Shown here one piece after another: positions 8,183 to 57,498 of a stretch of 64,000 nt of DNA (the first letter of the stretch is position 1; each line of letters opens with the position of its first letter). The notes beneath the pieces are model-generated. The model had not been told where the DNA came from and ran no database searches. It saw only the letters and a program-made list of their open reading frames with translations. The position numbers were made by a program, and so were the translations under genes. The stretch lies in the sequence record MN871447.1; one strand, given 5' to 3'.

Positions 8183-8255
8183 GTTTAAGTCCTATGCGAA
8201 AAATTCAATCGAGAAGAAGGTACGCCGACTCAGGACGGCGAATGTCATAAAAAGC

Positions 8256-8282
8256 GAAGGAGAGCGCTAAGCGCTCTCCTTC
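8256..8282. terminator. Intrinsic terminator hairpin (bidirectional geometry)
   Basis: gaaggagagcgc-taa-gcgctctccttc 12-bp stem; on minus strand followed by GCTTTT-TATG. Confidence 0.85.
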
Positions 8283-8298
8283 CGTATCTTTTTCTTAA

Positions 8299-8835
8299 TT
8301 AGCTACCAAAGCCATCCTGGGTACCAGGGATGTCGGTGGTGTTCATTCGCGTTTCAGCGGCGGTGATGGTCAGAGTGATCGTACCGAAAAGGGTCAGGTG
8401 GTTTTCAGCCATCGTCACTTTAACGGAAACGGTACTATCTTCATTGGTGACCGGCGCGTCGACGACAATGTCACTCGCTACCATTGAAGAGGAAAATTTA
8501 TCGACCAGGTACGCTAACGCACTGGCGGCGGCATCAGCTTCGTCCCAATTAGCCAGGTCATCAGTGATCGCCTTTTCAATAGCGTAACCCGCGATATCTT
8601 TACGGAGGTAATACACCGTTTTCGCTTCACCGTAAACCAGCGTTGAACTGGCCACCGGGGTTAACAGTACTGATGTGTTCGCGCCATCTTCACGTCCAGA
8701 AACGGCGGTGATATTGGACGCGGTCAAATCGGCGTCAGTGAATACTTCACCCTCAGGGAGAGCAGTGGTTGATTTAGTCAATAAATCATAGAAGGCCGCT
8801 TTGGGGGTTTTCGTTAAATCTAATGAGACCGCCAT
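8299..8835 (-). CDS. Virion structural protein (Ig-like/beta-rich)
   Basis: 178-aa ORF with GAGGA SD; shares N-terminal fold pattern (F.L.....; T.V.L......Y.G...VYY.R.DI) with 8855..9709 and 6106..7251. Confidence 0.6.
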   Translation of the reverse strand: MAVSLDLTKTPKAAFYDLLTKSTTALPEGEVFTDADLTASNITAVSGREDGANTSVLLTPVASSTLVYGEAKTVYYLRKDIAGYAIEKAITDDLANWDEADAAASALAYLVDKFSSSMVASDIVVDAPVTNEDSTVSVKVTMAENHLTLFGTITLTITAAETRMNTTDIPGTQDGFGS

Positions 8836-8854
8836 CGTTTATTTTCCTCTTTGA

Positions 8855-9709
8855 TCAACTTAAATTGTAGTGCAGAATTAAATGTCCTGCAACATTAGTA
8901 CATAAGGTACTGTCTAAATGGATCACGACGCAACGCTCGTAGTTAGTGTTGACGTAAACGGGAGCAGAGGTTGTTAGTCCGTTAAAGTACACGGTGGCGC
9001 CAGCCATGTTCCATGCGGCGGGGGTTGGAGTATTAATCCAGGCTTCTGGAGACTTACGGTTGAGGATAGTGAGGAGTTCCCCCTCGATCAAATCACCGTA
9101 GCCAAACCGCTGCATGTTATCGGCGTCGTAAGTGTAATCCTGAGCATAGAGGTAGAGCGGGCCCTGAATCTTCACCGACTGGTTTGTCGGGTAAGCTAAA
9201 CCGTCGAGGTCTTTGTTCCGAATAACCGTATCGATGGCCTTTTTCGGATCGCCGATGTTGACTTCCAGAATCCCCGTAAACGCCGGACAGGTTGGGCGAA
9301 TACGAATCTGGGTCACAGTCGGAACGATGCTGAGGTTGAGTACTTCGTCGTAAATGTCTTCTGCGGCTAATTGAAAACCAAAGTTAAGATTGATCTCCGC
9401 TAACAGATCGGATTTCTTAAACTTGTTGCTGGCAGAGACATAAACGTCAACTTCAGCAAAGATTTCAGCGATATCTGGACGGTTCCAGGTCAGGGCGATT
9501 TCCCCTTCGCGGCCCATCCCTAAGATCGCAACGAGTTTACCCGCGGTGTTGCGCTTGGGATCCCCGTTTGTATTTTCGGTAAAATTGGTCAGGCGCACCT
9601 GATCTTGCGTAAAGTCGCTTTCTGGGTTCGCTTCTTTGATCAAATCAAAGACGAGTTCGTCGGTGGGTTTATTGTAGTAACCGTTCGGTGTGGCCATTAT
9701 AGACTCCAA
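8855..9709 (-). CDS. Virion structural protein, paralog family of 6106..7251
   Basis: 284-aa ORF with GGAG SD; W.RPDIAEIF, LLAEINLNFG, KDLDGLAYP motifs. Confidence 0.6.
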   Translation of the reverse strand: MESIMATPNGYYNKPTDELVFDLIKEANPESDFTQDQVRLTNFTENTNGDPKRNTAGKLVAILGMGREGEIALTWNRPDIAEIFAEVDVYVSASNKFKKSDLLAEINLNFGFQLAAEDIYDEVLNLSIVPTVTQIRIRPTCPAFTGILEVNIGDPKKAIDTVIRNKDLDGLAYPTNQSVKIQGPLYLYAQDYTYDADNMQRFGYGDLIEGELLTILNRKSPEAWINTPTPAAWNMAGATVYFNGLTTSAPVYVNTNYERCVVIHLDSTLCTNVAGHLILHYNLS

Positions 9710-9733
9710 GTGAAAACTGTTATGTCATAACAA

Positions 9734-9755
9734 AAAAGGCGGTGACCCGCCTTTT
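9734..9755 (-). terminator. Intrinsic terminator hairpin
   Basis: aaaaggcgg-tgac-ccgcctttt; minus strand continues TTTTTTGT-TATG. Confidence 0.75.
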
Positions 9756-9771
9756 CCGTAACACAATCTTT

Positions 9772-12216
9772 TTATTCGAAAGGCAATAAAACCGACGTCG
9801 GGAAAAACTCATTAAGTAACAGCGGCTCAGTGAACCCCAAGAGTCTATCTGGCATAACTTGCCACAACTGAACACGCGGGATCTTCCTTACCCATATACC
9901 GTCGAGAGTCGTTTCCCCTAAAACAATCTCAGGATCACGTTCGATCTTTTTCACCCAGAGACCGTCCAGATTTCGAACGAGGACTTCCGTTTGAAGCAGG
10001 TCGTCGGCTTCTGGTGGGTAAACCCAAAGACCGGGGAGCGCCAATGTTTTAATGATGTCGTCAAGAGGACGGTAATCGACGTGGTACAGCCACAACCCAT
10101 TGAGTTCGGTGTTCTTCACGTCAATAGTGATATCTTCTGTCAGACTTCCTTTAAAGCGTACCTCGGCAATCGGGATTCGATGAATCGTTTTGATCGCTGT
10201 ATCGCAAAGTAATCCGATACCCCAATCCAGTCGGTAATAGTAGTTAGCGTAGATCTCTTTAACGTTGAGATCAACCGCTTTAAACGGCGGGAGCACCGTA
10301 CTACTTTTTCCTTTCTGTTTTTGGTCAATGACCTCTACACGCGAAGGCAGCTGAACTTTACCGTACCCCTTACTTTCCACTTTACCGTAACGGACCGCCA
10401 GGTTGTCTAAAACAATACCTGGAGCAGCGATCGTTTTGTGGACGTACTGAACGCCGTAAGAAGAAAGTTGAGTCATGATCCCGATCATTGCGCTGTGAAT
10501 ATCCGAGATACTGATTGTCGACCGGAGATCTGAACCTGTCGCAATAGTGAATATACTCAGTGCAAAATCTGACCATTCCTGCGGGGTTGACATGGACAAT
10601 GTCCAGTTCTTTTCTTTAAACCACGTCGCGTATGTTGTCGGTTGATCGACCAGTGTACAAGGTTCGTCACAATAGAATTTCCGACAGAGGACTTCCCACT
10701 CACCACGTTGGTAAAGATCTTCCATTGACGTATACATCATCCGGTGGGCTGACAAGTTCCCTTGTATAGCGACTGCCGTGGAATAAAAGGCTTCCGTAGA
10801 GATGATCGTACTTACTGAGGTCGTCTCTGTCATTGCCACTTGTATCCCGAGTTCTGTCACGTACGTTTTCTGCGTTGCTTTACGCAGCTCTGAGAACGTT
10901 GGACTTGGAATACGTTGCGCGAAGAAAGCGGTCAGTTTAGGAATGTCCGTGAGCGTTATTTCAAACTGCTGCATCACCGCGTAGACCCAAAGTACCAATG
11001 CCTCCTTCACTGACATTGACATCGCTTCCTGCGAAATAGGGTCAGTTAAGATAATATTGGCAGTGTACTTCCCGTGAGAGGCGAGGTAGATCCATTCCGT
11101 TAATAACGTATCGGTCAGCTTCCGCGGCATGGCATCAGACTGGTCGACCATAACCGATTCGAGTACTTTCGTGGGGAGTATGTTGGTGATCGCGTTTTTA
11201 ACCATATCCGGCACGGTAGATTTTTGCGTCTCAAGATAATCGGCATTATCTTTTGCAGAGTCGACTTCATTCTCTAACGCGTCTTCGATCGTGATATACT
11301 GAATACCGCTGACAGATTCAGCCAAGGTATTCTGCGGGATCTTAGCCACGGTACCAGTGCTGTAAATCCCTTCGCCGATACTTGACGTATCTTGTTGTAA
11401 TTCGTACGCGGTGAGCGGGATACGTCGCTCCGTCAGGATATTCGCGATAAGATCAACAAAGGTACTGGTTTTCCCGGCGTGCGCCTCGATGTATTCAATG
11501 TTACGGTACAGATACAGCGCCTGTTTGAGACTCGTGTAGTCTTTGAATTTATTGAGTCGGCCATGCGACCCCAGATAACACCAAAGATGATAACTGTGCA
11601 CTTGGGGCGTTCTTACGTACCGATTTCGGATATTAATAATTTCGCCAGGAAGGTGAGAAAACATTAAACCAAAAAAGGTCGCCGGATATTGCAGTTGTAC
11701 ACGAGCAGGGAGCGGCATGTACCAGCGGTTGGTAAAATTATTAATCCACTCTTGCAGGTCGCTGATTAAATACACCTCTTGTGACTCAACGTGCTCTGAA
11801 TCGTAATAGAGGATTTCCCAACTCTTCGCGCTCAGAATCGTCTCCATGGGAACCGGGTTGAGAATCCCACGTATCAGCGTTTCTTGATTAGGGTAACGGG
11901 AGAGCAGATTCTGATAATAACTTGTCCCGTACGCGTAGGCTTTACGCGTGGCGCGGTGTAATAGTAAGTTATCATATGTGAACTCGATCGTCTCGAGTGT
12001 ATCTAAAGAAACAACCGTCATTGGGGTATCGCTGGCATGGTATTGTCCTGCCAGATTCATATAGTACGCCCATGTGCTAGGTGCACTTGGGTCGACGTTA
12101 TACCCGATAAGTGAAAGGTATTCGTTACGCATCGTGGCGGCGGCAGGAAATTTAATCGTCAATGTCTGTGCCAATGCCATAACGCTATCTAAATATAACT
12201 TCTGCGTGGTATCCAC
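9772..12216 (-). CDS. Baseplate wedge-like virion protein
   Basis: 814-aa ORF divergent from portal (arrangement recalled for phiKZ-like phages); W.YYMNLAGQYH, LYLYRNIEYI...AGK motifs; C-terminal L[ND]GLW repeats. Confidence 0.6.
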   Translation of the reverse strand: MDTTQKLYLDSVMALAQTLTIKFPAAATMRNEYLSLIGYNVDPSAPSTWAYYMNLAGQYHASDTPMTVVSLDTLETIEFTYDNLLLHRATRKAYAYGTSYYQNLLSRYPNQETLIRGILNPVPMETILSAKSWEILYYDSEHVESQEVYLISDLQEWINNFTNRWYMPLPARVQLQYPATFFGLMFSHLPGEIINIRNRYVRTPQVHSYHLWCYLGSHGRLNKFKDYTSLKQALYLYRNIEYIEAHAGKTSTFVDLIANILTERRIPLTAYELQQDTSSIGEGIYSTGTVAKIPQNTLAESVSGIQYITIEDALENEVDSAKDNADYLETQKSTVPDMVKNAITNILPTKVLESVMVDQSDAMPRKLTDTLLTEWIYLASHGKYTANIILTDPISQEAMSMSVKEALVLWVYAVMQQFEITLTDIPKLTAFFAQRIPSPTFSELRKATQKTYVTELGIQVAMTETTSVSTIISTEAFYSTAVAIQGNLSAHRMMYTSMEDLYQRGEWEVLCRKFYCDEPCTLVDQPTTYATWFKEKNWTLSMSTPQEWSDFALSIFTIATGSDLRSTISISDIHSAMIGIMTQLSSYGVQYVHKTIAAPGIVLDNLAVRYGKVESKGYGKVQLPSRVEVIDQKQKGKSSTVLPPFKAVDLNVKEIYANYYYRLDWGIGLLCDTAIKTIHRIPIAEVRFKGSLTEDITIDVKNTELNGLWLYHVDYRPLDDIIKTLALPGLWVYPPEADDLLQTEVLVRNLDGLWVKKIERDPEIVLGETTLDGIWVRKIPRVQLWQVMPDRLLGFTEPLLLNEFFPTSVLLPFE

Positions 12217-17407: not shown

Positions 17408-19024
17408 TTATTCGGTAATTTCCCGCTGTACCATATCGAGGAGTTCAATGTTTTTCGGATTACGAATAAATTTCCCGGCGTCGTCGGTGTGGGCGTAAAC
17501 GTTTAGACGTCCACGGCCGTCGGGGATACCTTTCGCAAAGTTGCACACTGAACCACATTCCATGATACTTGAATGCAGGTGGTAAGCCGTTTCGTTAGGT
17601 TTGAAACTTTTTGTCTTACCTTTACCGATAACAGCATTGACTTGACGGATAGCGATACATGTATGTTTGAAAATCATGTTATCGCCTGGGTACTGAACAG
17701 AGTTAAGTTCGCCGTGTCCCCGTTGGATACCGAGGAATGCGTTAGTGGTTAGGAAACTGGACAGCTTCCATGTTAACCGCTTCAGTCGCAGCGTTTTCTG
17801 TTCTTTTTCTAACTGCCAGGTAAAGTTAAAGATACTCTCCGTGATGCCCGATAACGCATACCGTTTCACCAGGAGATATTTCCCCCACATGTTACCCGAA
17901 TTATCGTCTTTCAGTCGATCCTGGATTGTCTCAAGGATATGGATAAACAACTCGTAAAGGTCATTGGCCATGATCCCTTCTTGACGAAGGTTTTTCTTCG
18001 TCTCGCCATCAACGTAAGAGTCGAGCGACTTAAGATGGAGATCAACCTTGTTGAGCAGTTTCCCTTCGTTCTCGTTCCCCTGATGCAGAATAAAGCCCAT
18101 GATAATGCGCCACGTGTCTGGCATATCGATGTACTGCAAATTGAAGCGTTGCGGGTAACGATCGACGACGTAGAAGAAATGCGTCGCCAGTAACTGAACA
18201 CCGATATTGTTCAACACCGCTTCACGCGGAATGATCAACGCCAGGTTCGTGGGTTTCCAATCGCTGATAGCGCGGCGGCGTTCCGGCGGCGGTAACCCTT
18301 GCGTGGTAAAGATCACGTAGTCTTGTTCTGGGTAATCCTCACGTAAGTTGTGGCGGTTCTCTTCGATCACGACGTCAATGTCGTAGAAACGTTTAAAGGT
18401 TTCCGTTACGCCATACTTACAGAACAGGTAATGACCCAGCGTCGAGTTAAACGACGATTTCTTCCCTTCGTTCCCTGTTTTACCTTGATAGATATTTCCG
18501 TAGACTACAAAGGACGGGATTGATTCGCCGTCTTGTAGGACACTGTAAATACTCCGTTTCAAGGTGAACTTCGCTCGGAAGAGGATTGTGAACAAATCAT
18601 TCCCGGCGACCGAGAAAACCAAATCCGCCAGGATCGGATGAATTGTTGCACGTGAGCCGCCTAACCATAACGTCCCTGCTTCCCTGACAAACGGAATATT
18701 GATGTTCCGTGGTAGGATGTGGATTTTCTGAAAACGCAGTTTCATTTCCGACATCACCGCGTCAGTTTGCGCAATATCAACTTCCCCACGACGTTCCGCC
18801 TTTTCATTCCCTTTAATGATCGCCTGAGACTCTTCGTAGGGCGTCAGTCTACGCATCCCCAGGTATTCGACATCGGGAGGAAAGTCCTGTGCCGCACAAT
18901 GCGCAATTCGATCGATATACTGTTCGGCATCCTCTAAATCCTTAACAGCAAATCCACCGGCAATGTCTTTGTTGAACTTGGGTAACGGTTCAACAATGTC
19001 ATTAAACAATGCTATATCAGCCAC
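17408..19024 (-). CDS. Non-virion RNA polymerase beta N-terminal subunit (phiKZ gp123-like)
   Basis: GTG start with AAGGA SD; IPFV..AGTLWLGG (beta region A-like), HSSIMECGS...GRGRLNVY (GRICP-like); position next to MCP as recalled for the family. Confidence 0.75.
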   Translation of the reverse strand: MADIALFNDIVEPLPKFNKDIAGGFAVKDLEDAEQYIDRIAHCAAQDFPPDVEYLGMRRLTPYEESQAIIKGNEKAERRGEVDIAQTDAVMSEMKLRFQKIHILPRNINIPFVREAGTLWLGGSRATIHPILADLVFSVAGNDLFTILFRAKFTLKRSIYSVLQDGESIPSFVVYGNIYQGKTGNEGKKSSFNSTLGHYLFCKYGVTETFKRFYDIDVVIEENRHNLREDYPEQDYVIFTTQGLPPPERRRAISDWKPTNLALIIPREAVLNNIGVQLLATHFFYVVDRYPQRFNLQYIDMPDTWRIIMGFILHQGNENEGKLLNKVDLHLKSLDSYVDGETKKNLRQEGIMANDLYELFIHILETIQDRLKDDNSGNMWGKYLLVKRYALSGITESIFNFTWQLEKEQKTLRLKRLTWKLSSFLTTNAFLGIQRGHGELNSVQYPGDNMIFKHTCIAIRQVNAVIGKGKTKSFKPNETAYHLHSSIMECGSVCNFAKGIPDGRGRLNVYAHTDDAGKFIRNPKNIELLDMVQREITE

Positions 19025-20046: not shown

Positions 20047-20135
20047 CCGTACTTCCTGTTAGTGAATTGAAATGGAACTTTCGTTCCGGTCAGTTTGGAT
20101 CTTTCTCAAGGATCCTTCTATACACTCTCAATAAG

Positions 20136-20143
20136 GTAATATA
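20136..20143 (-). promoter_or_regulatory. phiKZ-type early (vRNAP) promoter core TATATTAC
   Basis: Minus strand reads ...cagaccTATATTACcttatt..., an exact match to the published phiKZ early consensus core, upstream of the nvRNAP-subunit operon. Confidence 0.7.
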
Positions 20144-20176
20144 GGTCTGAACATTTTTCGATTTGACGGACATAGA

Positions 20177-20206
20177 CCCAGTCTCCCGCCGAAGCGGGAG
20201 ACTGGG
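20177..20206 (-). terminator. Stable C(UUCG)G hairpin after the MCP stop, without U-tract
   Basis: Minus strand cccagtctcccgc-TTCG-gcgggagactggg, 13-bp stem, followed by tc-TATG. Confidence 0.7.
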
Positions 20207-22590: not shown

Positions 22591-22594
22591 CATA
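22591..22594 (-). promoter_or_regulatory. Late (nvRNAP) promoter core TATG upstream of MCP
   Basis: Minus strand ...gaatcaTATGacaatttc...; TATG is the established phiKZ late-promoter core; a second TATATTATG lies near 22626-22634. Confidence 0.5.
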
Positions 22595-22640: not shown

Positions 22641-23201
22641 TTAGCCGGATACCGCTACACGAAGGTAACGTTTAAAGAATTCGTATTGTTTGAATTCCCC
22701 GTACTCCAATTTACCACCGACGGTTTCCAATAAAGCATTGAAGAAAGCACGCTCATCCTGAAAAACCGGGACACGGCTCCCTATAAGAACTAATGTATCG
22801 GAATCCACCAGTAACGGCAGGTAATACTCTTTCGCCATCAAACCCGTTGCCTGGAATGAGAGCGGCGATTCGTTCTTTTCGGCTAGAGCGTCTGACACAT
22901 TAACAGAGATACGCACGTTCTCAACCTTTTTACTGCGATCGGCGAGGAACAGTGCGTTGGCATCGGTCGAAGCAATAGAAGGAATATCTTCGAAAGCGCG
23001 ATCCGTGAAGGCATTCACGAAATTCTGCGTCAGCGCATAAATAATGACTTGCTCCTCTGATAATATAGAAGACTTCGTCTCCAACAATTTAGAAAAGCAA
23101 AGAAGATCTTGATAGCTGAGGTCCGGGGATGCGGTGACTACCTCATCCAACCAACTCGGAACCACCGCGACACGAAGACGTTTTATTGGTGTGATCTTCA
23201 T
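22641..23201 (-). CDS. Conserved hypothetical/virion protein upstream of MCP
   Basis: 186-aa ORF between helicase and MCP; TTTTATG promoter-like core upstream. Confidence 0.6.
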   Translation of the reverse strand: MKITPIKRLRVAVVPSWLDEVVTASPDLSYQDLLCFSKLLETKSSILSEEQVIIYALTQNFVNAFTDRAFEDIPSIASTDANALFLADRSKKVENVRISVNVSDALAEKNESPLSFQATGLMAKEYYLPLLVDSDTLVLIGSRVPVFQDERAFFNALLETVGGKLEYGEFKQYEFFKRYLRVAVSG

Positions 23202-23258
23202 AACGGCCCCTGTGGGTGAAAAATATTTTTTAACATAAAATTTGAGTGAGATGGAACC

Positions 23259-24818
23259 ATGAATTATAAAATGACGATTGTGAACGCCTTGGCGCTGTTG
23301 TTCTGGGAAAACCAGATTAGTTCAGGAAGCGATAGTAAGGCACTCGTCAAGAATATCATGCAGTATGCTAACCCCGGTAAAAACTCCACCGACAGTGACA
23401 GAGTAAAAGAAATTTACGAAGGGTTACAAGTTCTCATTCTTAAGATGACGTCACGTCAGGATCTTTGTAAGAATAGAGAACTCATTGTACAGAACGTCAG
23501 AATGATTGCAGCGGATGAACCTTACGTTGTCGACATTGTTGAAGGAGCACTCGATTTACACTTAGATGAAGCCGCCATCAAAAACCATTGTCGTCTCCTG
23601 ATTCAGGAGTTAAACGACGTCATACGTAAAGCAGAGTTTCGCAAACGCTTCCAGGAATTCAGTAAAGATGTGCTTTACGGCGACGGAGAATTTCAGCTGA
23701 ACGAAGTCGCCAGAAGCATGATCACACATTTTGAAGGTTATGCGCACGATAAAAGCGATAAGCCTGAACATACGCCAGGCGTTATGGATTTCGTTGACTT
23801 CAACGATGAAGAATCCCTGAAAGCAATCTTCACTCGAGCTCGTGATCAGATCTCTCCGGACGAGATTATCAAGTTTGGTCTTCAGGGACTCAATCGGATG
23901 TTTGGTGAGCAAATGGGTGGTCGTCGTGGTGAGATGGTTTTAGTCGGTGGTTTACAACACCATTTCAAATCGGGTCTGACAATGATGATGACTCGGGGCG
24001 CAGCACTTTATAATATCCCTAAATTAAAAGACCCGACGAAGAAACCGGCAATCGTACTGATATCGTCTGAGAACGACCTGCCGATCAACATGCAAACCAT
24101 GTATAAGCAATGTGTTGAACCGACGTTAGGACGTCAGATTAAGAAGAACGAAATTGATCCTAATATTGCAGCACAGTTCATGAAAGAGAAGTTTGCCGAG
24201 AATGGTTGGCATTTCTTGATGTTCCGCATTAACCCGGATGAATTCACTTTCTCTTCACTGCAATCGTTGACGTTAGGTCTCGAAGCAGACGGTTACGAAA
24301 TTGTCGTCATGACGTTCGACTATTTGGCGATGATGTCCAGTAAAGGTTTTGATAACGGTGGAATCACTGGACGTGAGAAACAAGCCATGTTTAAACGCAC
24401 CCGTAACTTTATGGTCATGCGTCATGTTCTGTTTATCACGCCTCACCAGTTGTCAACTGAAGCCTTGAGCATCGAACGTGATCGCCCTGGGCAGTTCCTT
24501 AATGAGATACTTAACCGAGCTTACTATAACGAATGTAAAACCATCGCTCAGGAAGTAGACTTTGAAGTCAATATCCAAAAACAAATTGTCGATGGCGTCG
24601 CGTATTTAAACTTGGGGCGCGGTAAACACCGTGGGGTAGATAACACACCAATTCAGGATCAACGTTGTACCTACCGCTTTACGGACATTGGGATTCCTGA
24701 TGACATTTACACCGAAGACCAATCGATGAAAAAACCAGGTGCCCAGACCGCAGGACAGGGTGGGGGTGCAGCTTGGTTCCAGACTAACGACCAACTCAAC
24801 GATTTCGTACTCAACTAA
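23259..24818 (+). CDS. dnaB: DnaB-like replicative helicase (phiKZ gp118-like)
   Basis: G.RRGEMVLVGGLQHHFKSG (variant Walker A), LISSEN, VMTFDYLAMM (Walker B), FITPHQLS, QEVDFEV, LGRGKHRG. Confidence 0.85.
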   Translation: MNYKMTIVNALALLFWENQISSGSDSKALVKNIMQYANPGKNSTDSDRVKEIYEGLQVLILKMTSRQDLCKNRELIVQNVRMIAADEPYVVDIVEGALDLHLDEAAIKNHCRLLIQELNDVIRKAEFRKRFQEFSKDVLYGDGEFQLNEVARSMITHFEGYAHDKSDKPEHTPGVMDFVDFNDEESLKAIFTRARDQISPDEIIKFGLQGLNRMFGEQMGGRRGEMVLVGGLQHHFKSGLTMMMTRGAALYNIPKLKDPTKKPAIVLISSENDLPINMQTMYKQCVEPTLGRQIKKNEIDPNIAAQFMKEKFAENGWHFLMFRINPDEFTFSSLQSLTLGLEADGYEIVVMTFDYLAMMSSKGFDNGGITGREKQAMFKRTRNFMVMRHVLFITPHQLSTEALSIERDRPGQFLNEILNRAYYNECKTIAQEVDFEVNIQKQIVDGVAYLNLGRGKHRGVDNTPIQDQRCTYRFTDIGIPDDIYTEDQSMKKPGAQTAGQGGGAAWFQTNDQLNDFVLN

Positions 24819-24858
24819 TTCATTCATAACCTTTTCACTCAATAACGGCATAGTGCCG

Positions 24859-24890
24859 CTCCCATGGATAGCGAAAGCTATCCATGGGAG
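24859..24890 (+). terminator. Intrinsic terminator after helicase
   Basis: ctcccatggatagc-gaaa-gctatccatgggag 14-bp stem followed by gcttttt. Confidence 0.85.
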
Positions 24891-24900: not shown

Positions 24901-25263
24901 TTATACGCTTTTTAGCGGATTCAGTTTGTCTACTTCGGGGTTACACGGGTACTGCTGTTTGAGCTTGCGGTAAAGACATCCTTTATACCGTGTCAGGTTA
25001 TCCTCCACCAACTTCAGTAATTCATCGCCGGTATAGTCCGCACCTTCGTCTCCCGTAAAGAAACCGACGTAGATCAGATGGAGACAGATAGCGGCGGTAC
25101 TGTCCTGCTGTTGATGTTTGTATTTGAGCAGTTCTAACATTTCACTGGCCGACTTGATCACGAAATGATCTATTTTATCGATGAGTCGGTAGACGTGTTC
25201 TATCTGTTCTGTTGTTGTCATACGTTCCATACGACGTTCGCCAAGATTAATCAAGTCAGCCAT
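24901..25263 (-). CDS. Hypothetical protein
   Basis: 120-aa ORF with AAGGA SD. Confidence 0.6.
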   Translation of the reverse strand: MADLINLGERRMERMTTTEQIEHVYRLIDKIDHFVIKSASEMLELLKYKHQQQDSTAAICLHLIYVGFFTGDEGADYTGDELLKLVEDNLTRYKGCLYRKLKQQYPCNPEVDKLNPLKSV

Positions 25264-31737: not shown

Positions 31738-31805
31738 TATTCTTCCCTCTGGGGCCCGAAAAAGTCATAGGAATGCAAGGCCAGAAGCCTTGCATTCCGG
31801 GTTTC

Positions 31806-36744: not shown

Positions 36745-36793
36745 TTTAAGTATTCCTTTCCCAGGAGAAGGCGTGTTAGGAAGAAAAGTCATA

Positions 36794-36826
36794 CAAACCT
36801 ACCGTCCACCAGGGACGGTAGGTTTG
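36794..36826 (-). terminator. Hairpin without U-tract abutting TATG
   Basis: caaacctaccgtcc-accag-ggacggtaggtttg 14-bp stem; minus strand continues directly into TATG (36790-36793). Confidence 0.7.
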
Positions 36827-41866: not shown

Positions 41867-43042
41867 ATGGCTTCATATAACCAAATCATGCAAGACAACC
41901 TGGACCTCGTTTTTCGTGCGGGTGGTCTGGGTTCTCGTCGTGCTGCGGCCTATGAAATGTTGTTCGGGTTAAATTATCGAGCAAGAGGACAGGTCGTTCC
42001 GGCGCAACGAGATCAGGTAGGTCTCACATTTTTTACTCGTCCAGACCTGAACTTACACAGGGACAACGTTACACAAGATAGGACGCTGACCGATTTGATT
42101 TCCACTGACGAGATCACGTATCCTCGTGCGATTCGTGCGATTCTCGACCCCGTGGGCTCAAGTGATCCTAACTTTGATTACAGTTGTAAGTTGGTCAATC
42201 CACGTAACCCTTTCATGTGCGTTTTAACGAATACCTTAAAAAGCGTTTCAGGTTTCCCTGACAACGCCATTGGTAAATACACCAGTAATGAAGGGATTGC
42301 CGGTGAACAATGGGGGATGGCAGACGGCTATTACAACATCCGTGGTAACTATCAATTGACAGCTTCATTCGCTAACGTTGACGGTTCCCCGGTTCTCAGA
42401 CTCTTCGATGTCTGGGAACGCTATATGGAAAATATCCGCACCAAAAAGATGAAGCCGTGGAGCCGAAATATTTACCGTAATCGAATGGATTACACCACAC
42501 GTATTTATCGTCTGATATTGGACCCCGGTCGGCGCTTTGTTCAACAGATTGGAGCCACCGGTTATGCGTTCCCTATCACTAACCCACGTGGCGGTGTCAT
42601 GAACTTTGATGCGGACGATAACTACGACCGCAGTACGGATCTGATTTCCATTCAGTTTGACGCTTACGGTGCGATTTATGACGATCCGTTATTGATTCGT
42701 CAATTTAATAAAGTCGTGGCCATGTTTAACCCGGATCTGCGTATCATCAATGAAACCAGTTTAAACAAAAGTAATATCGCGGTGAAGAGTAACAACTATT
42801 ATCGTGTCACTCCCGATCAACGAGAATACCTGAACTATTATTGTTACCCTCTCATTCATCCGTATACTCGAGAACTCTGCTGGTTTATCGAGAAACCGAT
42901 TTACGACTTAATCATGGCGAACAATTACGCTGTTCCTAACTACGACTATAACGCACTCCCTAACGATACTGATGACACTTATACCGGTTATCAGTCTAAT
43001 GTTTGGGATACCCTTGACCTCACGAAATCAGGAGACAATTAA
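41867..43042 (+). CDS. Virion tail/baseplate protein (tube-initiator-like)
   Basis: 391 aa; GLTFFTRPDLNL, LTNTLKSVSGFPD, RMDYTTRIYRLILDP, AFPI..P.G tube-like motifs. Confidence 0.6.
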   Translation: MASYNQIMQDNLDLVFRAGGLGSRRAAAYEMLFGLNYRARGQVVPAQRDQVGLTFFTRPDLNLHRDNVTQDRTLTDLISTDEITYPRAIRAILDPVGSSDPNFDYSCKLVNPRNPFMCVLTNTLKSVSGFPDNAIGKYTSNEGIAGEQWGMADGYYNIRGNYQLTASFANVDGSPVLRLFDVWERYMENIRTKKMKPWSRNIYRNRMDYTTRIYRLILDPGRRFVQQIGATGYAFPITNPRGGVMNFDADDNYDRSTDLISIQFDAYGAIYDDPLLIRQFNKVVAMFNPDLRIINETSLNKSNIAVKSNNYYRVTPDQREYLNYYCYPLIHPYTRELCWFIEKPIYDLIMANNYAVPNYDYNALPNDTDDTYTGYQSNVWDTLDLTKSGDN

Positions 43043-45948
43043 TGTCTGATTACGACGTTAGTGCGGCGTTAGCGCGCGCACCGATTAACCCGGAATCCTT
43101 TCAGCGTGTAGGGATCGAATTCCTGACGAGCAAATTGAACGGTGACTCGTTAGTGGATGTAAATGCGCCCGCTATTCACTTGCTCGAAGCGAGCAGTTCG
43201 ATGGCGGCTTATCATATCCAAGAAAACTTTGCGTTAGACCGTCGCCATTATCGTTTACTTGCGCAGAACTACATGGACCTTTATGGCCATCTTTCTGACG
43301 TTGATTACCTCGGTCGTTTTAGTTCACCGGGGAAAGTCACCATGCGGTACACTGTGAGCTACGATGACATTATTGCCAGCATGATCGAGGTCCCTGACAC
43401 CAACCTGAAACGCGTGGTGATTCCGCGTTACACTGAAGTCAGACCAGGCGGTGATTACCCGTTAACGCTTCTCTACCCGATTGAGATTCGACAGCTCCCG
43501 CATGACGGTTTACAAGTGGTGTTCAACACCGACGAGACCAGTCCGATTCAAACTTTGACTGATAACGTTCTGAACTGGCAGTTCTTAAAAGACGCCACGA
43601 GCGATCAAGCAACTTATTTGCAGATTGAGATCCCCATGTTCCAGTTGGCCAGGAACAGTATCATCGAACAGATCTCCGACGGTAATTCTCGTTTCGCGGT
43701 ACCGTTCACTGACAAATATTACTACGCCCGTGTTTTCCAGGGAACAAGCGGAAATTGGAAAGAACTCGGTACTACGCACTCTCTTCAGGTTTACGACGCA
43801 TCGTCTCCCACGGCGGTATTGCAAGTAGGCGACGGGGTTCTTAACGTTACGATCCCGCCTATCTATTACACAGCGGGCTTAGTCTCTGGTAACCTTCGTA
43901 TCGACGTTTATACTACGCAAGGCGAGATCTACGAAGACCTGACTAACTTCGCAACCGAGAAGTTTCAGATCACCTGGGGAAAAGACGCCGAGATTCCTGA
44001 TCTCGACAACTACTCATCGAGTATTCCTAACCTCCCTTATGCGTGGACGTCGACAGAAGCGATCACTGGGGGATCAGACGGTTTGACGTTTGAGGAACTT
44101 CGTGAAAGAAGTATTTTTAACGTTTCTAATAGCGTAGATAATACTCCTATTACTCCGGCACAAATTTCTGCACGCTTGAATTTGTTAGGGTTTGATATTG
44201 TCAAATCCAGAGATGACATTGTTGATCGTCTTTATCTGGCGACCACGAATATGCCTACTGCACCGGAATCAATTCTCAATGCAGGGATTCCCGCAGCGAT
44301 GACGACGCTTCAAACCAGTATTGAAAAGTTAACGAAAGTCCAGGGTGTTTACGATAACGGTGATCGTATTACGTTATCGCCGGAAGTGCTCTTCTCGTTA
44401 ACTAACGGGGTGTTATCACTGGTCGATAATAACATGCGACCGGAAGTACTGTATAAAACCCCGGAAACATTTGTCAATGGAATCAACCAAGCGAACTACG
44501 CGTTTACTCCGTTCCATTACGTATTAGATACGAGTTCGAATGCGTTCTCATTACGACCGTATTACCTGCAAAACCCGGAACAAACCAAACGCCGTTTTAT
44601 CCGTGACAACGCCACGCTCCTGATTGACGTCAGTACAACCGGTTTCAACATCACCCGTACGACAACAGGCTACCGACTGACCATTGCTTGCACAGTGGGG
44701 CAGAGTTACTTAAACATCGAGGCAAGTAACCGTCATGTTCAGTTGGCCTTTATCCCTGCCGGGGAAAACGCTTATGCTTATCTGAACGGAACCTTTATGG
44801 GGATTACCGGGAAAACGGCAGTCTGGGCGTTTGACTTTAAAACCAACTTCGATCTGGACAGTGACAACAATCTCATTATCACCAACTTCAGTATCTTTGA
44901 GGAAGAGCCGCGTAAACTGGCATTACCGTTAGAAACGGAGTTTATGTTATTACATGCGGTCAGCGGTGATGTTGACGACGGTTATCAGTATTCGGCGATC
45001 GACGGATTGCTCGGTGAGTTTTTACTCCCTGACGACACGAAAGGGATCTCGCAAGAGTTTGTTACGCTGAAATTTGGTACAGCGTTAGAACGACTCTGGC
45101 ACGGTGCACGTAACGTAGCCGGTTCTTACGTTTATCAGACCTACGCAAGTGACGTCTACGATTATTACACCGCAGACATCCCGGAATACGATGCAAACGG
45201 TGTCCCGGTCTTTGTCATTGAAAATGGTCAACCGGTGATCTCTTATGCTCACAAATCAGGGGATCAAAAAGTGGATGGTTCGGGTAACCCGATTGTCTTA
45301 CATAAGGCAGGCGACCCTGTTTTAGACAGTGGCGGTAATCCGGTTCCCGTATCCGCAAGACCGGTACTTCGTCTCATCGATCTCTTGATCTTTGACGGTA
45401 ACTACGCCTACGTCTCTCAGGATACGGATTTAACAGATTTGAAATGGACAGCAAATAATCTGGCTAATACGCAACTCGAGAAATTAGCGGAATTAGGAAA
45501 CGCAGTCCTGGAGAAAACCAATATCTACCTCTACCCGAAACGCGGCTTCGGTCCAATTTCGGTTGTCGTTGATGACGGGGTGGAGAAAGTTATTGACTCG
45601 TCACTGACCTTTTCCGTGAAGTTCTATTTAACTGGGACGGCGTATCGTGATATGGACTATCGGGCTGCGTTGCAGACGTTGGCCGCGAAGATTCTGAACG
45701 ATGGTATCCGAAACGAAACCGTTTCTGTCTCAACACTGGTTACGTTGTTGAAACCACAGCTCGATGAGAACGTAGTCGGCTTTGATATCAACATGTACGC
45801 ACAAGGGACGGAGATGACCACCTTCACGCTTTCTGACGCATCGGTTCAACCTACCATTGATCGGGTGATTGAATACACCGAGGACGGTAAATACGCCGTG
45901 AAAGAAAACATTGAGTTTCTGTTTAAAAACCATACGGTAAGTAACTAA
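43042..45948 (+). CDS. Baseplate wedge protein (phiKZ gp87 / SPN3US gp48-like)
   Basis: 968 aa; TAATG coupling with upstream gene; ITGGSDGLTFEELRER resembles baseplate J / gp6-type wedge motif. Confidence 0.65.
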   Translation: MSDYDVSAALARAPINPESFQRVGIEFLTSKLNGDSLVDVNAPAIHLLEASSSMAAYHIQENFALDRRHYRLLAQNYMDLYGHLSDVDYLGRFSSPGKVTMRYTVSYDDIIASMIEVPDTNLKRVVIPRYTEVRPGGDYPLTLLYPIEIRQLPHDGLQVVFNTDETSPIQTLTDNVLNWQFLKDATSDQATYLQIEIPMFQLARNSIIEQISDGNSRFAVPFTDKYYYARVFQGTSGNWKELGTTHSLQVYDASSPTAVLQVGDGVLNVTIPPIYYTAGLVSGNLRIDVYTTQGEIYEDLTNFATEKFQITWGKDAEIPDLDNYSSSIPNLPYAWTSTEAITGGSDGLTFEELRERSIFNVSNSVDNTPITPAQISARLNLLGFDIVKSRDDIVDRLYLATTNMPTAPESILNAGIPAAMTTLQTSIEKLTKVQGVYDNGDRITLSPEVLFSLTNGVLSLVDNNMRPEVLYKTPETFVNGINQANYAFTPFHYVLDTSSNAFSLRPYYLQNPEQTKRRFIRDNATLLIDVSTTGFNITRTTTGYRLTIACTVGQSYLNIEASNRHVQLAFIPAGENAYAYLNGTFMGITGKTAVWAFDFKTNFDLDSDNNLIITNFSIFEEEPRKLALPLETEFMLLHAVSGDVDDGYQYSAIDGLLGEFLLPDDTKGISQEFVTLKFGTALERLWHGARNVAGSYVYQTYASDVYDYYTADIPEYDANGVPVFVIENGQPVISYAHKSGDQKVDGSGNPIVLHKAGDPVLDSGGNPVPVSARPVLRLIDLLIFDGNYAYVSQDTDLTDLKWTANNLANTQLEKLAELGNAVLEKTNIYLYPKRGFGPISVVVDDGVEKVIDSSLTFSVKFYLTGTAYRDMDYRAALQTLAAKILNDGIRNETVSVSTLVTLLKPQLDENVVGFDINMYAQGTEMTTFTLSDASVQPTIDRVIEYTEDGKYAVKENIEFLFKNHTVSN

Positions 45949-45953
45949 AGCAC

Positions 45954-45985
45954 ATAGACTGAGAGGCATTCGCCTCTCAGTCTAT
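45954..45985. terminator. Bidirectional hairpin between convergent genes
   Basis: atagactgagaggc-attc-gcctctcagtctat 14-bp stem. Confidence 0.8.
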
Positions 45986-45988: not shown

Positions 45989-47224
45989 TCACGCATCGGT
46001 AGATTCGGGTTGTGCACTAACCATGTAGATGTAAAGTCGTTTCAACCAGCGGCGGTTGTCATCGTAAAAGTCCAGCGAGACGTCCGTCACAAATTGCAGA
46101 ATGGTCAAACATTCATGGACGTGTTCACTGACGTGACGGATCTGCTGAACAACGGTTTTATCACGGTCGTTATATTTCGACTGCTCAACTAACTTCTCGG
46201 TCGCTGACAATGAAGCATGTACCCGCTTTGAAACCGCAATGATTCGATCACCATCGGCATCGCTGAACAGTAACAGGGAGGTTTCGACTTTTAAGTTATC
46301 GTACGCATGTTTACAAAGGTCGGCGATCTTGGTGCTGTCAAAAGCAATATCATTATTGACGGCGACTTCTTTAAGATCGGCCAATGTTTGATAACCACTT
46401 TTGATTTTTTCCAGTGTGCTGTCGCCTTCTGCGTTCAACAACTTAAAGATCTTCTCGAGATCCGTTGACTTAAACCCGGTGCTCTCTGCGGAAGTGATCT
46501 CGTGACCCTCGTCCCACTTCCCAGTTACTACAGCCTTCACTAACGCTTCAAGGCGGTCCACGTTCGTCTCGAGATAGTCAACGATTTTACCCGGATGTCT
46601 AATAAAGGCACCGAGTGCTTTGTGCAAGTTTGTATCCGTGATCGCCCTGGCGCTATATTGGCTGTAGTTATCGTTGATGGCAGCAGCGATAGGGGAAAGC
46701 TTTTCGTCGTTAACGATTTCTTCTTTGCTGCGCATCTTAAATTGGAAGCCCAGTTCGTCAACCTTTTTCAGAAACGCATCAGTCTCTTCCCGTTTGACCT
46801 TCCCGATTGCCTTGTTAAAAAATTCACCAAAGGCTTTGATTTTCTCACCCACCCATTTTAACGCCCGTTTGATCATGCTTAAAATGGAATGACCGATCTG
46901 TTTAATGATCTCTTCACAGGCGACGTTCTGTTGTGTTTTGGAACGCTTCAGGGTATAAGAGTTAGTCGGGTAATGATCGGGGAAGGGGAGAATATTCAGA
47001 GCTTCCACTGCCGCCATACTGGCACGATCAACACCGTTCTTCTCCACATCTTCGAGTGTCTCTTCCAGTGCCTCAAGTTGCGCATCGTCACCCACACGTT
47101 TCACCATGTAAAACGACCACTGGTTATTTAACTCCATGACGATATCGCGGAGATTTTTACCGTCCTCACCGACAAACGTGAATACGCCGGGTACCGGCTT
47201 CACAATTTGATTATTCGTTTCCAT
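45989..47224 (-). CDS. Internal head protein, paralog family
   Basis: 411 aa; AAVEA, VACEE followed by ILSMIKRALKWVGEKI amphipathic helix. Confidence 0.65.
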   Translation of the reverse strand: METNNQIVKPVPGVFTFVGEDGKNLRDIVMELNNQWSFYMVKRVGDDAQLEALEETLEDVEKNGVDRASMAAVEALNILPFPDHYPTNSYTLKRSKTQQNVACEEIIKQIGHSILSMIKRALKWVGEKIKAFGEFFNKAIGKVKREETDAFLKKVDELGFQFKMRSKEEIVNDEKLSPIAAAINDNYSQYSARAITDTNLHKALGAFIRHPGKIVDYLETNVDRLEALVKAVVTGKWDEGHEITSAESTGFKSTDLEKIFKLLNAEGDSTLEKIKSGYQTLADLKEVAVNNDIAFDSTKIADLCKHAYDNLKVETSLLLFSDADGDRIIAVSKRVHASLSATEKLVEQSKYNDRDKTVVQQIRHVSEHVHECLTILQFVTDVSLDFYDDNRRWLKRLYIYMVSAQPESTDA

Positions 47225-51984: not shown

Positions 51985-53358
51985 TTACTTCAATGCACTC
52001 TTCCAGTCAAACTTCTCCACTTTTAAAGATCGACCGTGCATCGCACTCATCTGGATACCCATTATTATCGATCCGACCTCCGTAGCCAATGCCCCTAAAG
52101 CGGTCTTCGTATTCTCGAAACGTTTCCCGATACACTTCACGCAGAAGTTACCGTCGGTCGTGTGGCAAAAAAGCGGTGAGCGGAACAAATAACGTTTCCC
52201 GTGTGAGGCAGCAGCGATCTCTGGCGTCATGAGAGTGAGTACGTTCTTCTCATCAAAGAAGTAAGACCAATGAAAACCTTCCTCATTCTCTTTCGTTACC
52301 GTGTGCTCCAGCCCAAGTCTGGAACCGCAATCGTCTTCTGCAATAGCCGTGTTCATGAAGAAGCGACCAATGAACTTAGCGGCCTCGCCCCCTAAGGCGG
52401 TCATAGCGCCTCGGTTGAAGGAACCGTCGATAAGGGAGTTCGCCATCTCCGGAAGTTTATTGATATCCCATTGCTCTGACAGCGGGTTTTGAATAACCGT
52501 GATTTTGTTTCGGTTTTCAAAGTCGTATTCGATAGCGTGGGAGATATAAGCCTTAGCACGGACGACATCGAAGTCTTTAGAACCGGGTCTCAGGAATCCT
52601 TTCTCGGGGTCTTGGGACTGGAATTCGATATCGTACTTGATCAGTTCGGACATGATTTTGGCGACAATCGCAGGATCGTCAAGTTGGTCCTTATACTGTT
52701 CGTACAGTGCCGTACGGCGTTTTGCCATGTCAGGGGCAGTAACGATCGTGTAGGGTGTTGCAGCGGGTGTTGCGAGCTGACACCAGCCCGTTAAAGAGAA
52801 AGCGGCCGGATAGTATTTACTTTCCAGTTCATCAGTATAGATCTTCTGTGGATCGCGTTCACTGGGGTCTTCCGGGGGTGTTTCTAACAGTTCAGCAATC
52901 TTATCTTCGATCTTGCCTATTTTGATCTCACCCGCTATAAAAGGAATACGGTCTTTGAAAGGGTAACAAAGTACCGTTTGGTTAACCATGACATTCCCTA
53001 CAAGCGTAGTGACTTTCTCTTTTACGTTGACGAGGTCGCCTGGTTCTAAATCAATTTTGTCTTTGAACCGGAAAGGGGCGATACCTGGTTCAGCACCTTG
53101 AAGAACTTCCCATTCTTTACTGAAGGGATTAAAGAAGACTACCTGACCGTCTTCCTGGAAAAGTTGAAAGGGGTATTCCTCGAAATCTTCGCGACGGGGT
53201 TCATCTTTAAAGTAAAGCGGGTACTTCCCGTTCGGTCTGCGCTCAGGGTCTTTCTCCGGGTAGTTGACGATACCAAAAGCATCGATGACCCATCCTTTAT
53301 AAAGGAAACTGCCGTAGTTCAGAGCAGTTAATAAATAATCGCGTTTAAGCATGGTCAA
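51985..53358 (-). CDS. Virion RNA polymerase beta' middle subunit (phiKZ gp80-like)
   Basis: NSLIDGSFNRGAMTALGG (bridge-helix region), EDDCGS, RSPLFC..TDGNFCVKCIG (beta' Zn site), GSIIMGIQMSAMHG (trigger loop). Confidence 0.85.
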   Translation of the reverse strand: MTMLKRDYLLTALNYGSFLYKGWVIDAFGIVNYPEKDPERRPNGKYPLYFKDEPRREDFEEYPFQLFQEDGQVVFFNPFSKEWEVLQGAEPGIAPFRFKDKIDLEPGDLVNVKEKVTTLVGNVMVNQTVLCYPFKDRIPFIAGEIKIGKIEDKIAELLETPPEDPSERDPQKIYTDELESKYYPAAFSLTGWCQLATPAATPYTIVTAPDMAKRRTALYEQYKDQLDDPAIVAKIMSELIKYDIEFQSQDPEKGFLRPGSKDFDVVRAKAYISHAIEYDFENRNKITVIQNPLSEQWDINKLPEMANSLIDGSFNRGAMTALGGEAAKFIGRFFMNTAIAEDDCGSRLGLEHTVTKENEEGFHWSYFFDEKNVLTLMTPEIAAASHGKRYLFRSPLFCHTTDGNFCVKCIGKRFENTKTALGALATEVGSIIMGIQMSAMHGRSLKVEKFDWKSALK

Positions 53359-54184: not shown

Positions 54185-54262
54185 TATTGAGCCCTTATGT
54201 AAATTTTAATTCACAGTAAGCGTAATTTGAATGAAAATCTTTTTCTAACTGAGGCAAATGAC

Positions 54263-54691
54263 ATGTCTAAAGCACGTAAGAAGAAACCCACTAAAAAGCC
54301 CGGTTACATGAAGTTACACGGGTTTCAATACATCAATGACATTATTCGGAAATCACCGAAGTTACTCTCCGAAGCCGCCACTATAGTAGTGCAGTTCGAC
54401 GCCTTAGATGAAAAAACTCTTTCTTTAGGGGAAATCCTGAAAGGGAAAGAAGAGATCAAGAAGATCGCAGAGAAAGCACCCTCTATTCGAACGACGCTCG
54501 AAGAACTGAAAACCGATTTCGAAACGCTGGTTGCGACACCGGGTAAAAAGGAAGAAGAGCACTTCGCCGATTTGGTTGGACGTGCTGCTGAATTTATTTC
54601 AATGATCACTGAAGACGTGATTGCGCCGATGGCAGAGATCGCGGAGATTGTAGAAAAACGCATTAACCAAAAGGAAACTGTCAATGTCTGA
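54263..54691 (+). CDS. Hypothetical protein with basic N-terminus and coiled coil
   Basis: Better start MSKARKKK at 54263 with GAGG SD. Confidence 0.65.
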   Translation: MSKARKKKPTKKPGYMKLHGFQYINDIIRKSPKLLSEAATIVVQFDALDEKTLSLGEILKGKEEIKKIAEKAPSIRTTLEELKTDFETLVATPGKKEEEHFADLVGRAAEFISMITEDVIAPMAEIAEIVEKRINQKETVNV

Positions 54692-56408: not shown

Positions 56409-56812
56409 TTGAGAAGACAGGCGGATTGGGGAACCTTTCCGCCAAAGTGGCGTTGCGCAGGGCGTACGACCTCGATAACGGGATTTACTCTGAAGCAGTA
56501 GATGCCAAAGTCCCATTCTCTCTTATTGCGATGCATGAACCCGAAGCGGCTGCAAACAAAGGGAAATGGGATGAGTTACTCGAAAAATATCACACGCACC
56601 AGATTAAAGATTACTTCAACTTTACGTTTACAGATTGGGTGAGTCAACCTAATGATATGGTTGAAAAGCAAATCAACACTTCTATTCGGTGGCGTGAACG
56701 AGAAGTCAATGCTAAATCGGAAGAAACGAAAGAGTTAGAGGCACAACTTTCCCAACAGGGTATTACGGTCCCTAACGTTCAAATGATGAAGGAAAAAGGC
56801 CATGGCCAATAA
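56291..56812 (+). CDS. -1-frame extension ('T' part) of the chaperone; track calls it as a TTG-start 128-aa ORF
   Basis: FYPCATQDYGSG...GGLGNLSAKVALRRAYD...; WDELLEKY...DYFNFTFTDWVSQP resembles gpT/gp51-type C-terminal chaperone domains. Confidence 0.7.
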   Translation, partial: FYPCATQDYGSGVGATDEFNDVRSDRFAIQGIGQRGSGLIEKTGGLGNLSAKVALRRAYDLDNGIYSEAVDAKVPFSLIAMHEPEAAANKGKWDELLEKYHTHQIKDYFNFTFTDWVSQPNDMVEKQINTSIRWREREVNAKSEETKELEAQLSQQGITVPNVQMMKEKGHGQ

Positions 56813-57440
56813 GTTTGATAAAATCCAAAAGAAATCTCAGGAACTCTCTGACGCAGCAGATGCGGTAGCAGAAACGGCTGCTTCGGGTGAGAACGACAAC
56901 GCTCCTGTTGCAGCAACCGTGGCAACCGAGTCTGCGGTAGGCGGCAGCGTGAAAGTAAGCACGGTCTCTGAAACTGCGGCTAAGACTTCAGCTGATGTTT
57001 ACGCTGGAGAAAGCGATGCGGTCAAATTGATCATTGCACACCTCGAAGACTACGTTCTGAAAATGGCGCCAGAAAAAGCGCAGACTGAATCTTCACTGAA
57101 AGAAAATCAGAGCGTGCTCTATCGGACACTGGAGCAACTGGTTAATCTGGACAATGTTGCGGATTTTGCGGTCTGCATGAAACGTCTGTTTGCGCTGGTT
57201 CGCAAATACGAAGACGGAGCCTTTGCGCCCAATATGCGTTTTCGTCGCCTGAGCCTTTTAGCGAAGGGTGATAAACAACTCGATAAATACATCGCGTTCG
57301 TCGACATGGTTTGCGCCTTTGCTACTCCCGCAGTGCGTAAAACTATCATTCAACGCTACAACCTGGCACGAGCGGCAGAATTCGCTAAACCGGAATATCG
57401 TGAGCGTCTGATTGAATTCGTGAAGGCGATCAGCGGTTAA
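56802..57440 (+). CDS. Conserved hypothetical protein
   Basis: 212 aa with AAGG SD; Ala/Ser/Thr-rich N-terminal linker and helical C-domain. Confidence 0.7.
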   Translation: MANKFDKIQKKSQELSDAADAVAETAASGENDNAPVAATVATESAVGGSVKVSTVSETAAKTSADVYAGESDAVKLIIAHLEDYVLKMAPEKAQTESSLKENQSVLYRTLEQLVNLDNVADFAVCMKRLFALVRKYEDGAFAPNMRFRRLSLLAKGDKQLDKYIAFVDMVCAFATPAVRKTIIQRYNLARAAEFAKPEYRERLIEFVKAISG

Positions 57441-57447
57441 GTTATAA

Positions 57448-57481
57448 CTCCCCTCTTCCCGTGTTTACGGGAAGAGGGGAG
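57448..57481. terminator. Hairpin between convergent genes
   Basis: ctcccctcttcccgt-gttt-acgggaagaggggag 15-bp stem. Confidence 0.8.
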
Positions 57482-57498
57482 AATATATGTTATTTCAA

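Follow-up and report, generated by a model that had tools for sequence, protein, structure and literature searches.

The closest described relatives of the signals considered here belong to the jumbo phage phiKZ, whose terminators, defined from mapped 3' ends, consist of a stem-loop followed by TTATK, with the consensus ...GGGRRGGBYTTATKYYGT (Putzeys et al. 2024, PMC10914365); 149 start sites and 61 terminators with this motif are tabulated there. The core of the phiKZ late promoter is TATG, with transcription starting at the G (Yakunina 2015, PMC4666361). The structure of the polymerase has this TATG held in a pocket of gp123, the non-template TATG being bound at −3 to +1 (PMC12809450), and the late promoters need features beyond TATG that have stayed undefined (PMC4666361, PMC12809450). 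Both signals bear on a stretch of DNA of 64,000 nucleotides (the window), which corresponds with zero mismatches to bases 186001–250000 of MN871447.1, a 305,006-bp genome deposited as Serratia phage KpLz_1_41 with Klebsiella pneumoniae as its host, and in which strong hairpins are repeatedly followed by TATG. A first-pass annotation of the window took these units to be terminator/promoter relays, or promoters that a cruciform formed by the hairpin helps the non-virion RNA polymerase (nvRNAP) to open, and overlooked that the hairpin plus TTATK is already published as the phiKZ terminator (PMC10914365).

With moderate confidence, and on the strength of sequence comparison, the hairpins are best read as phiKZ-like terminators with a YTATK tail, and TATG, separately, as the start word of the nvRNAP. 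Co-directional sites that read TATGAC would then be tandems of the two, and the hairpin would be no promoter element.

Hairpins, tails and the phiKZ terminator

The seven hairpin–TATG sites of the first-pass annotation all read as described and on the strand named, with a perfect stem of 9–15 bp, a loop of 3–5 nt and then TATG at the distances given in Table 1; an eighth, at 31766, was absent from that list. All eight hairpins are stable, GC-rich stem-loops that follow genes, at most 55 nt from a stop codon, with RNA folding energies of −20.5 to −32.9 kcal/mol (z −5.4 to −7.6), and none of 200 shuffles was as stable. It was also correctly seen that the stems at 20177, 36794 and 57448 lack an adjoining U-run, and that the TATGs at 24849, 45953 and 57486 all lie at convergent gene ends. 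Counts over the whole genome were made on the sequence rebuilt from the public record MN871447.1, with a hairpin defined as a perfect stem of at least 8 bp and a loop of 3–8 nt. By this definition the 305-kb genome holds 155 perfect hairpins, 95 of them intergenic, versus 23–34 in shuffles, and the 95 strong intergenic ones lie mostly directly 3' of stop codons. The enrichment that had been proposed as a genome-wide check is present, since 36 of 190 flanks have a TATG no more than about 12 nt 3' of the stem, versus 7.6 expected from intergenic DNA (p ~1e-14). The same enrichment beside hairpins is seen in the related phage FBKp24, and the stems covary between the two phages.

What follows the stem is a wider box, of which TATG is one form. 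TAT lies within about 10 nt of the stem in 81 of 121 gene-end flanks; the base 5' of it is a pyrimidine in 76 of these 81, and the base 3' of it is G or T in 60 (28 and 32, respectively), the remainder being A (17) and C (4). Aligned on TAT, the tails read Y-T-A-T-K (e.g., TTATT, CTATG and TTATG), which is the phiKZ tail of TTAT plus G or T, and the eight window sites are YTATG except for 36790 (GTATG) and 57486 (ATATG). The site at 24849 (TATGCCGTT) even matches the published phiKZ box TATKYYGT letter for letter. Where a gene on the same strand ends upstream and another starts downstream, TATG follows the stem in 15 of 67 cases (22%), compared with 15 of 54 (28%) at convergent junctions and 7 of 67 on the antisense side of co-directional junctions, the expectation being about 4% per class; the same three classes in FBKp24 give 13/65, 11/52 and 8/65. 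Were the word there solely for the downstream gene, convergent ends should have fewer copies; the counts show otherwise, which the published use of the hairpin with TTATK as a terminator motif explains. The 100 kb of phiKZ that were examined contain 37 GC-rich hairpins; 23 of these have a TATG tail, and 10 of the 23 have it on both sides.

The hairpin that ends the major capsid gene can be followed across the relatives, as phiKZ and six other relatives have one at the same post-capsid place, the stems being unrelated in sequence. The tails read TCTATGTCCGT in KpLz_1_41, TCTATGTTTG in FBKp24, TTTATGTTGT in phiKZ, TTTATGCCGCC in Eowyn, GTTTATGCTGT in Xanthomonas RTH11, TATGCCGTG in Erwinia Bosolaphorus, TTATTTTGCTATTTATGCCGT in Ralstonia RP31 and TTTATTTTG in Moabite, and PCH45 has a plain T-run. 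In phiKZ, Eowyn, RTH11 and Bosolaphorus the TATG immediately follows the hairpin, and in RP31 a TTATT run precedes it. The comparison indicates that the hairpin with YTATK is an old, clade-wide stop signal, so that the site at 20171 would be the orthologous copy of it. The stems would be hairpin terminators whose 3' tail carries the clade box YTATK, with TATG as one of its normal endings.

The likeness to the terminators of phiKZ and 201phi2-1 (PMC10914365; PMC11512511) extends to a GC-rich stem-loop after the gene, a tail of YTTAT(G/T) that is often followed by YYGT, a presence at both co-directional and convergent ends, the post-capsid position and the same two polymerases. The KpLz_1_41 elements, which are predicted from sequence, differ in that many of the stems are of an AGAGAGG type or unique and lack the CCYCCCC/GGGRRGG consensus, that the 5' side seldom bears the CATAA mirror that is common in phiKZ, and that CTATG is as common as TTATG.

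TATG as a probable start word

If TATG is the start-site word of the phage nvRNAP, as in phiKZ, it should matter where it stands and which way it points. When all 370 crude gene calls are compared with their synonymous-codon shuffles, none of the 256 4-mers is more strongly depleted on the coding strand than TATG (670 versus 1066 expected, z −17.4). Its complement CATA has depletion rank 4 (285 versus 455, z −11.9) and an equal fold-depletion of 0.63, and TATC, TATT, GATA and AATA are enriched in coding DNA. A word able to start transcription in either direction would be avoided equally on the two strands, as is seen here. Between genes, the base-by-base alignment with FBKp24 ranks TATG pointing at a gene on the same strand first in conservation among 215 intergenic 4-mers (56/78, or 72%, versus 46%, p 6e-6), above even the ribosome-binding words. 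Of the copies that point away from genes, 16 of 42 (38%) are retained versus a baseline of 43%, and sense differs from antisense with an odds ratio of 4.1 (p 4e-4). Sense copies are conserved with a hairpin (11/14) and without one (45/64), and the corresponding antisense figures are 7/18 and 9/24. The word is thus avoided within genes and kept before them, and the earlier view of TATG as a polymerase signal holds good in KpLz_1_41.

In these respects the element resembles the nvRNAP late promoter of phiKZ (PMC4666361, PMC12809450), where TATG likewise stands upstream of virion genes, and the gp123 ortholog is found in the same gene order; TATG is avoided in genes and conserved intergenically in the sense direction only. 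It differs in that the residues of the gp123 pocket are partly conserved, that a TATGAC subset exists in KpLz_1_41 and that the start sites there are predicted. This subset was also considered as a diagnostic promoter word, since AC follows TATG in 14 of 83 sense intergenic copies versus 1 of 44 antisense copies. It was rejected, as TATGAC is found inside genes too and is replaced by TATGTA before the capsid genes of distant relatives, and it is regarded as a local subset only.

The conservation data also bear on the proposal that a cruciform opens the TATG promoter and that the convergent copies start regulatory antisense RNAs, a proposal that now appears very improbable. Long perfect stems do abut TATG, phiKZ late promoters do need those undefined additional features, and two genomes show an excess of TATG at convergent tails. 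However, the best-conserved TATGs of the window, at 22591 before the capsid gene and at 23234, the positional counterpart of the phiKZ promoter P119L, are both without a hairpin, as is phiKZ P119L itself. At 22591, where the element is TATGAC, FBKp24 matches the whole stretch from this TATG up to the start codon at 100% identity, and the DNA upstream of TATG has diverged. Because such hairpin-less promoters exist, a cruciform-assisted promoter is unsupported. The majority of hairpins, moreover, have no TATG, and of the 29 TATGs located between a hairpin and the following start only 12 lie against the stem, more than the 17% expected (p 0.0015) but far from a rule. Antisense initiation fares no better, with TATG pointing away from genes conserved at background level and lost in FBKp24 at two of the three sites named for it, 45953 and 57486.

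The analogy with N4 that accompanied this proposal does not apply. N4 has a single-subunit virion RNA polymerase (vRNAP) that uses small conserved hairpins (5–7 bp stem, 3-nt loop) upstream of the start. A DNA hairpin close to the transcription start is common to both systems, but the stems of KpLz_1_41 are 9–16 bp long, diverse and covarying, with loops mostly of 4–5 nt, and so fall outside the N4 type, and the polymerases of KpLz_1_41 are split and multisubunit.

Probable tandems, plain tails and one shared word

With the hairpins read as terminators and TATG as a separate start word, the sites of the window fall into different uses. TATG points at a late gene at 8246, 9726, 20171, 31766 and 36790, and does not do so at 24849, 45953 and 57486. 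Four of the first group, 8246, 9726, 31766 and 36790, all read TATGAC, 17–64 nt ahead of virion-type genes, and in FBKp24 they keep TATG and 10–25 nt downstream of it, with loops changed, stems compensated and upstream flanks diverged. Because they share TATGAC with the conserved hairpin-less TATG upstream of the capsid gene, these four are probably compact terminator–promoter tandems, in which the tail TATG would double as the start of the following late gene on the same strand. They have the layout of the tandems of other compact phages (stop codon, hairpin, short tail, start word and a leader with a ribosome-binding site), and differ in that the terminator tail can itself supply the start word with its final four letters, because the promoter core of the polymerase overlaps the start site. 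The relay idea of the first-pass annotation therefore stands in part: the hairpins are of terminator type, and a tandem is the most economical account of 8246, 9726, 36790 and the additional 31766, but 20171, 24849, 45953 and 57486 are read as tails. The first of these would be the tail of the capsid-gene terminator, the genes behind it using a separate TATATTAC box; 24849 would be a terminator tail at a convergent gene end, and 45953 and 57486 tail variants under turnover at convergent ends.

It is unlikely, by contrast, that the hairpins are pure terminators throughout, with the adjacent TATG being only a stop signal and the downstream genes served by read-through or other promoters, and this low expectation extends to the four TATGAC sites. 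It would explain why TATG is equally frequent at convergent and co-directional ends, and it agrees with the derivation of the phiKZ motif from mapped 3' ends, with the separate conserved promoter-like box downstream at 20171 and with the 37 of 60 hairpin-to-start intervals that contain no TATG at all. It does not account for the match of the four sites to the conserved hairpin-less element before the capsid gene, for the bias of AC towards sense copies, for sense intergenic TATG being the most conserved 4-mer, or for conserved blocks that extend downstream of TATG and not upstream.

Several observations weigh against the combined reading of terminator tails and start words. Conservation of TATG inside the tails is not significant (12/15 versus 58%, p 0.11; at convergent ends 7/14 versus 35%), a result that favours pure terminators, and the contrast between the two largely mirrors a general difference, in that co-directional junctions evolve more slowly than convergent ones. 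The promoter use of hairpin-adjacent TATGs consequently rests on their TATGAC resemblance and orientation. In the gp123 ortholog, just 6 of the 14 published TATG-contact side chains are identical (S144, F151, K158, H331, S334 and Q466), with 3 of 14 conservative (H185Y, N186Q and Y406W) and 5 of 14 changed. The concentration of TATG tails in the 150–275 kb block of virion genes (17 TATG to 11 T-rich, versus 13 to 36 elsewhere, p 0.004) speaks for the tandems, but the boundary of this block was picked after the data were seen. Finally, the stem sequence shared in phiKZ, CCYCCCC ... GGGRRGG, is not found among the diverse stems of KpLz_1_41; that consensus describes the phiKZ copies, not the mechanism.

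A closer coupling of stop and start can also be envisaged, in which the gp123 pocket catches the tail TATG and pauses the polymerase, the hairpin releases the RNA without a U-run, and, where a gene follows, the enzyme restarts in place from the open bubble. The G of the tail lies 3–11 nt past the stem, the position expected for hairpin-driven release from what is generally known of intrinsic terminators. At the K position, G is favoured though it is not U-like, several TATG tails have no U-run, and TATGs cluster beside stems and in the late-gene block, as described above. The binding of non-template TATG at −3 to +1 in the gp123 structure (PMC12809450) would suit such a pause. The scheme is nevertheless pure inference, and the equal depletion of TATG on both strands of genes fits spurious initiation better than a sense-only pause, which argues for initiation as the main selective force. 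Many terminators use TATT or plain T-rich tails, and the adjacency of TATG and stem may reflect the compaction of short intergenic DNA. We regard the mechanism as improbable, and the notion of one word with two jobs for one enzyme, pause then restart, as a DNA-phage stop–restart relay, as distinctly doubtful. The literature that was searched contains no discussion of why terminator tail and promoter core share one word.

Table 1. Features of the window discussed in the text (two-way hairpins have a dot for strand; comparisons are with FBKp24).
Feature	Position	Strand	Remarks
TATG, 6 nt past stem, context GCTTTTTATGACATTCGCC; tail word and probable late start of virion gene 7265–8182	8246–8249	−	TATGAC class; surrounding 25-nt block identical, upstream flank diverged
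Terminator hairpin, 12-bp stem, 3-nt loop, after gene 8299–8835	8256–8282	−	−23.1 kcal/mol, z −5.4; stem retained, loop altered
TATG, 4 nt past stem, context TTTTTTGTTATGACATAA; probable late start of virion gene 8855–9697	9726–9729	−	TATGAC class; conserved
Terminator hairpin, 9-bp core lengthened by A/U pairs, after gene 9772–12216	9734–9755	−	−20.5 kcal/mol
gp123 ortholog, polymerase subunit that in phiKZ binds TATG	17408–19024	−	phrog_2943; 27.5% identity over full length, E 2e-65
TATATTAC box, candidate promoter of another class for post-capsid genes including the gp123 ortholog	20136–20143	−	
TATG, 2 nt past stem, context TCTATGTCCGT, phiKZ-type terminator tail	20171–20174	−	
Major capsid gene terminator hairpin, 13-bp stem, UUCG loop	20177–20206	−	−31.9 kcal/mol; compensatory changes
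TATG without hairpin (TCATATGACAATTTC), 65 nt upstream of capsid gene, probable late promoter	22591–22594	−	
TATG without hairpin, upstream of gene 22641–23201, counterpart of phiKZ P119L	23234–23237	−	
TATG, 6 nt past stem, context CGGCACTATGCCGTT, terminator tail pointing into helicase gene 3' end	24849–24852	−	Conserved
Two-way terminator hairpin, 14-bp stem, between convergent 23259–24818 (+) and 24901–25263 (−)	24859–24890	.	−32.9 kcal/mol including small second hairpin; plus-strand tail GCTTTTTAGC; compensatory change
TATG, TATGACTTTTTCGGG, gap 0, probable late start of gene 30196–31737	31766–31769	−	TATGAC class; TATG to ribosome-binding site nearly identical
Terminator hairpin	31770–31798	−	−22.6 kcal/mol; compensatory A-U to G-C change
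TATG, gap 0, context TTTGTATGACTTTTC, probable late start of gene 35305–36744	36790–36793	−	TATGAC class
Terminator hairpin, 14-bp stem, after gene 36844–39102	36794–36826	−	−24.7 kcal/mol; compensatory change
TATG overlapping last 3 stem bases (gap −3), unconserved tail variant	45953–45956	−	TATTG in FBKp24; "conserved" by automatic scoring, rejected as a gap artefact
Two-way terminator hairpin between convergent 43042–45948 (+) and 45989–47224 (−)	45954–45985	.	−25.5 kcal/mol
Split RNA polymerase beta fragment	51985–53358		phrog_2962
Two-way terminator hairpin, 15-bp stem, between convergent 56802–57440 (+) and 57499–58455 (−)	57448–57481	.	−31.3 kcal/mol
TATG, 4 nt past stem, unconserved tail variant	57486–57489	+	CTTTATAATTG / TTTATAAT in FBKp24

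Two of the sites in Table 1 require a further word. At 36790, the longest open reading frame (35305–36792, minus strand) begins at the ATG of the TATG itself; it is most likely over-extended, because the start annotated in the relative KpLz-2_45 corresponds to 36744, where a ribosome-binding site is present and the gene likely has its true start. At 24849, TATG lies within a small second hairpin, CGGCA-CUA-UGCCG (24846–24858, minus strand), which comes directly after the main stem and is kept in FBKp24.

Genomic setting, neighbouring elements and significance

From its gene content, KpLz_1_41 is a phiKZ-like, nucleus-forming Klebsiella jumbo phage. Its genome encodes homologs of the FBKp24 shell protein and PhuZ tubulin (PMC8386662 describes the shell and tubulin proteins of that phage), of the phiKZ virion-polymerase proteins gp149, gp178 and gp180, and of the non-virion-polymerase protein gp123, which places it among the phiKZ-like phages that have multisubunit polymerases of their own. 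The window aligns collinearly with KpLz-2_45, an annotated relative in the genus Siatvirus, and with FBKp24, to which it is about 76% identical. Between 15146 and 24818 the gene order helicase, gp119-like, capsid, gp122-like, gp123 ortholog and gp124-like is that of phiKZ gp118–124, with proteins only about 22–28% identical to those of phiKZ (about 22% for the capsid protein). An Rfam scan of the window returned zero family matches, a sigma-70 scan found 23 promoter-like sites versus 23.3 expected, thus no excess, and a literature search found no transcriptome of KpLz_1_41 or FBKp24.

The TATATTAC box about 30 nt downstream of the 20171 tail has a conserved counterpart in the corresponding position in FBKp24, phiKZ, Eowyn and Moabite. 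In the form TATATTAC(Y)YTATTGA it has five intergenic copies in the genome, all in sense orientation, the others being at genome positions 113643, 268633, 280496 and 296783, and other terminators of the genome are also followed by it. The box looks like the real promoter of the post-capsid genes and, being similar to the phiKZ middle-promoter word AAanTTACc, is a candidate for a second promoter class. Also past the capsid terminator, at 20097–20115 of the window (minus strand), is a conserved small leader hairpin, GGATC-CTTGAGAAA-GATCC, with a small stem just downstream; in FBKp24 the identical CTTGAGAAA loop caps two stems. This leader hairpin may be a protein-binding or regulatory leader element. 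Elsewhere in the genome, at 132882, 135243 and 137691 (plus strand), three near-identical modules of a hairpin with TTGTTTCG and TATGACCA occur in a cluster of plus-strand genes, and by sequence they look like repeated terminator–promoter cassettes. The annotation of FBKp24 also includes, within a tRNA cluster, a suppressor tRNA with the anticodon TTA (46041–46120).

The hairpin–TATG pattern is mostly explained by known elements, and its interest lies in how far these reach. Both the terminator box of phiKZ and its TATG start word are extended to a distant Klebsiella lineage, whose capsid protein and gp123 ortholog are only about 22% and 27.5% identical to those of phiKZ, and the resulting rules can be used to annotate the transcription units of these phages, which are candidates for phage therapy. 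The depletion statistic for TATG could in turn flag TATG-reading polymerases in other jumbo phages. The word shared by terminator tail and promoter core bears on the still unsolved matter of which features other than TATG make a phiKZ late promoter, and a stop–restart relay, if true, would explain why these late promoters need so little sequence.

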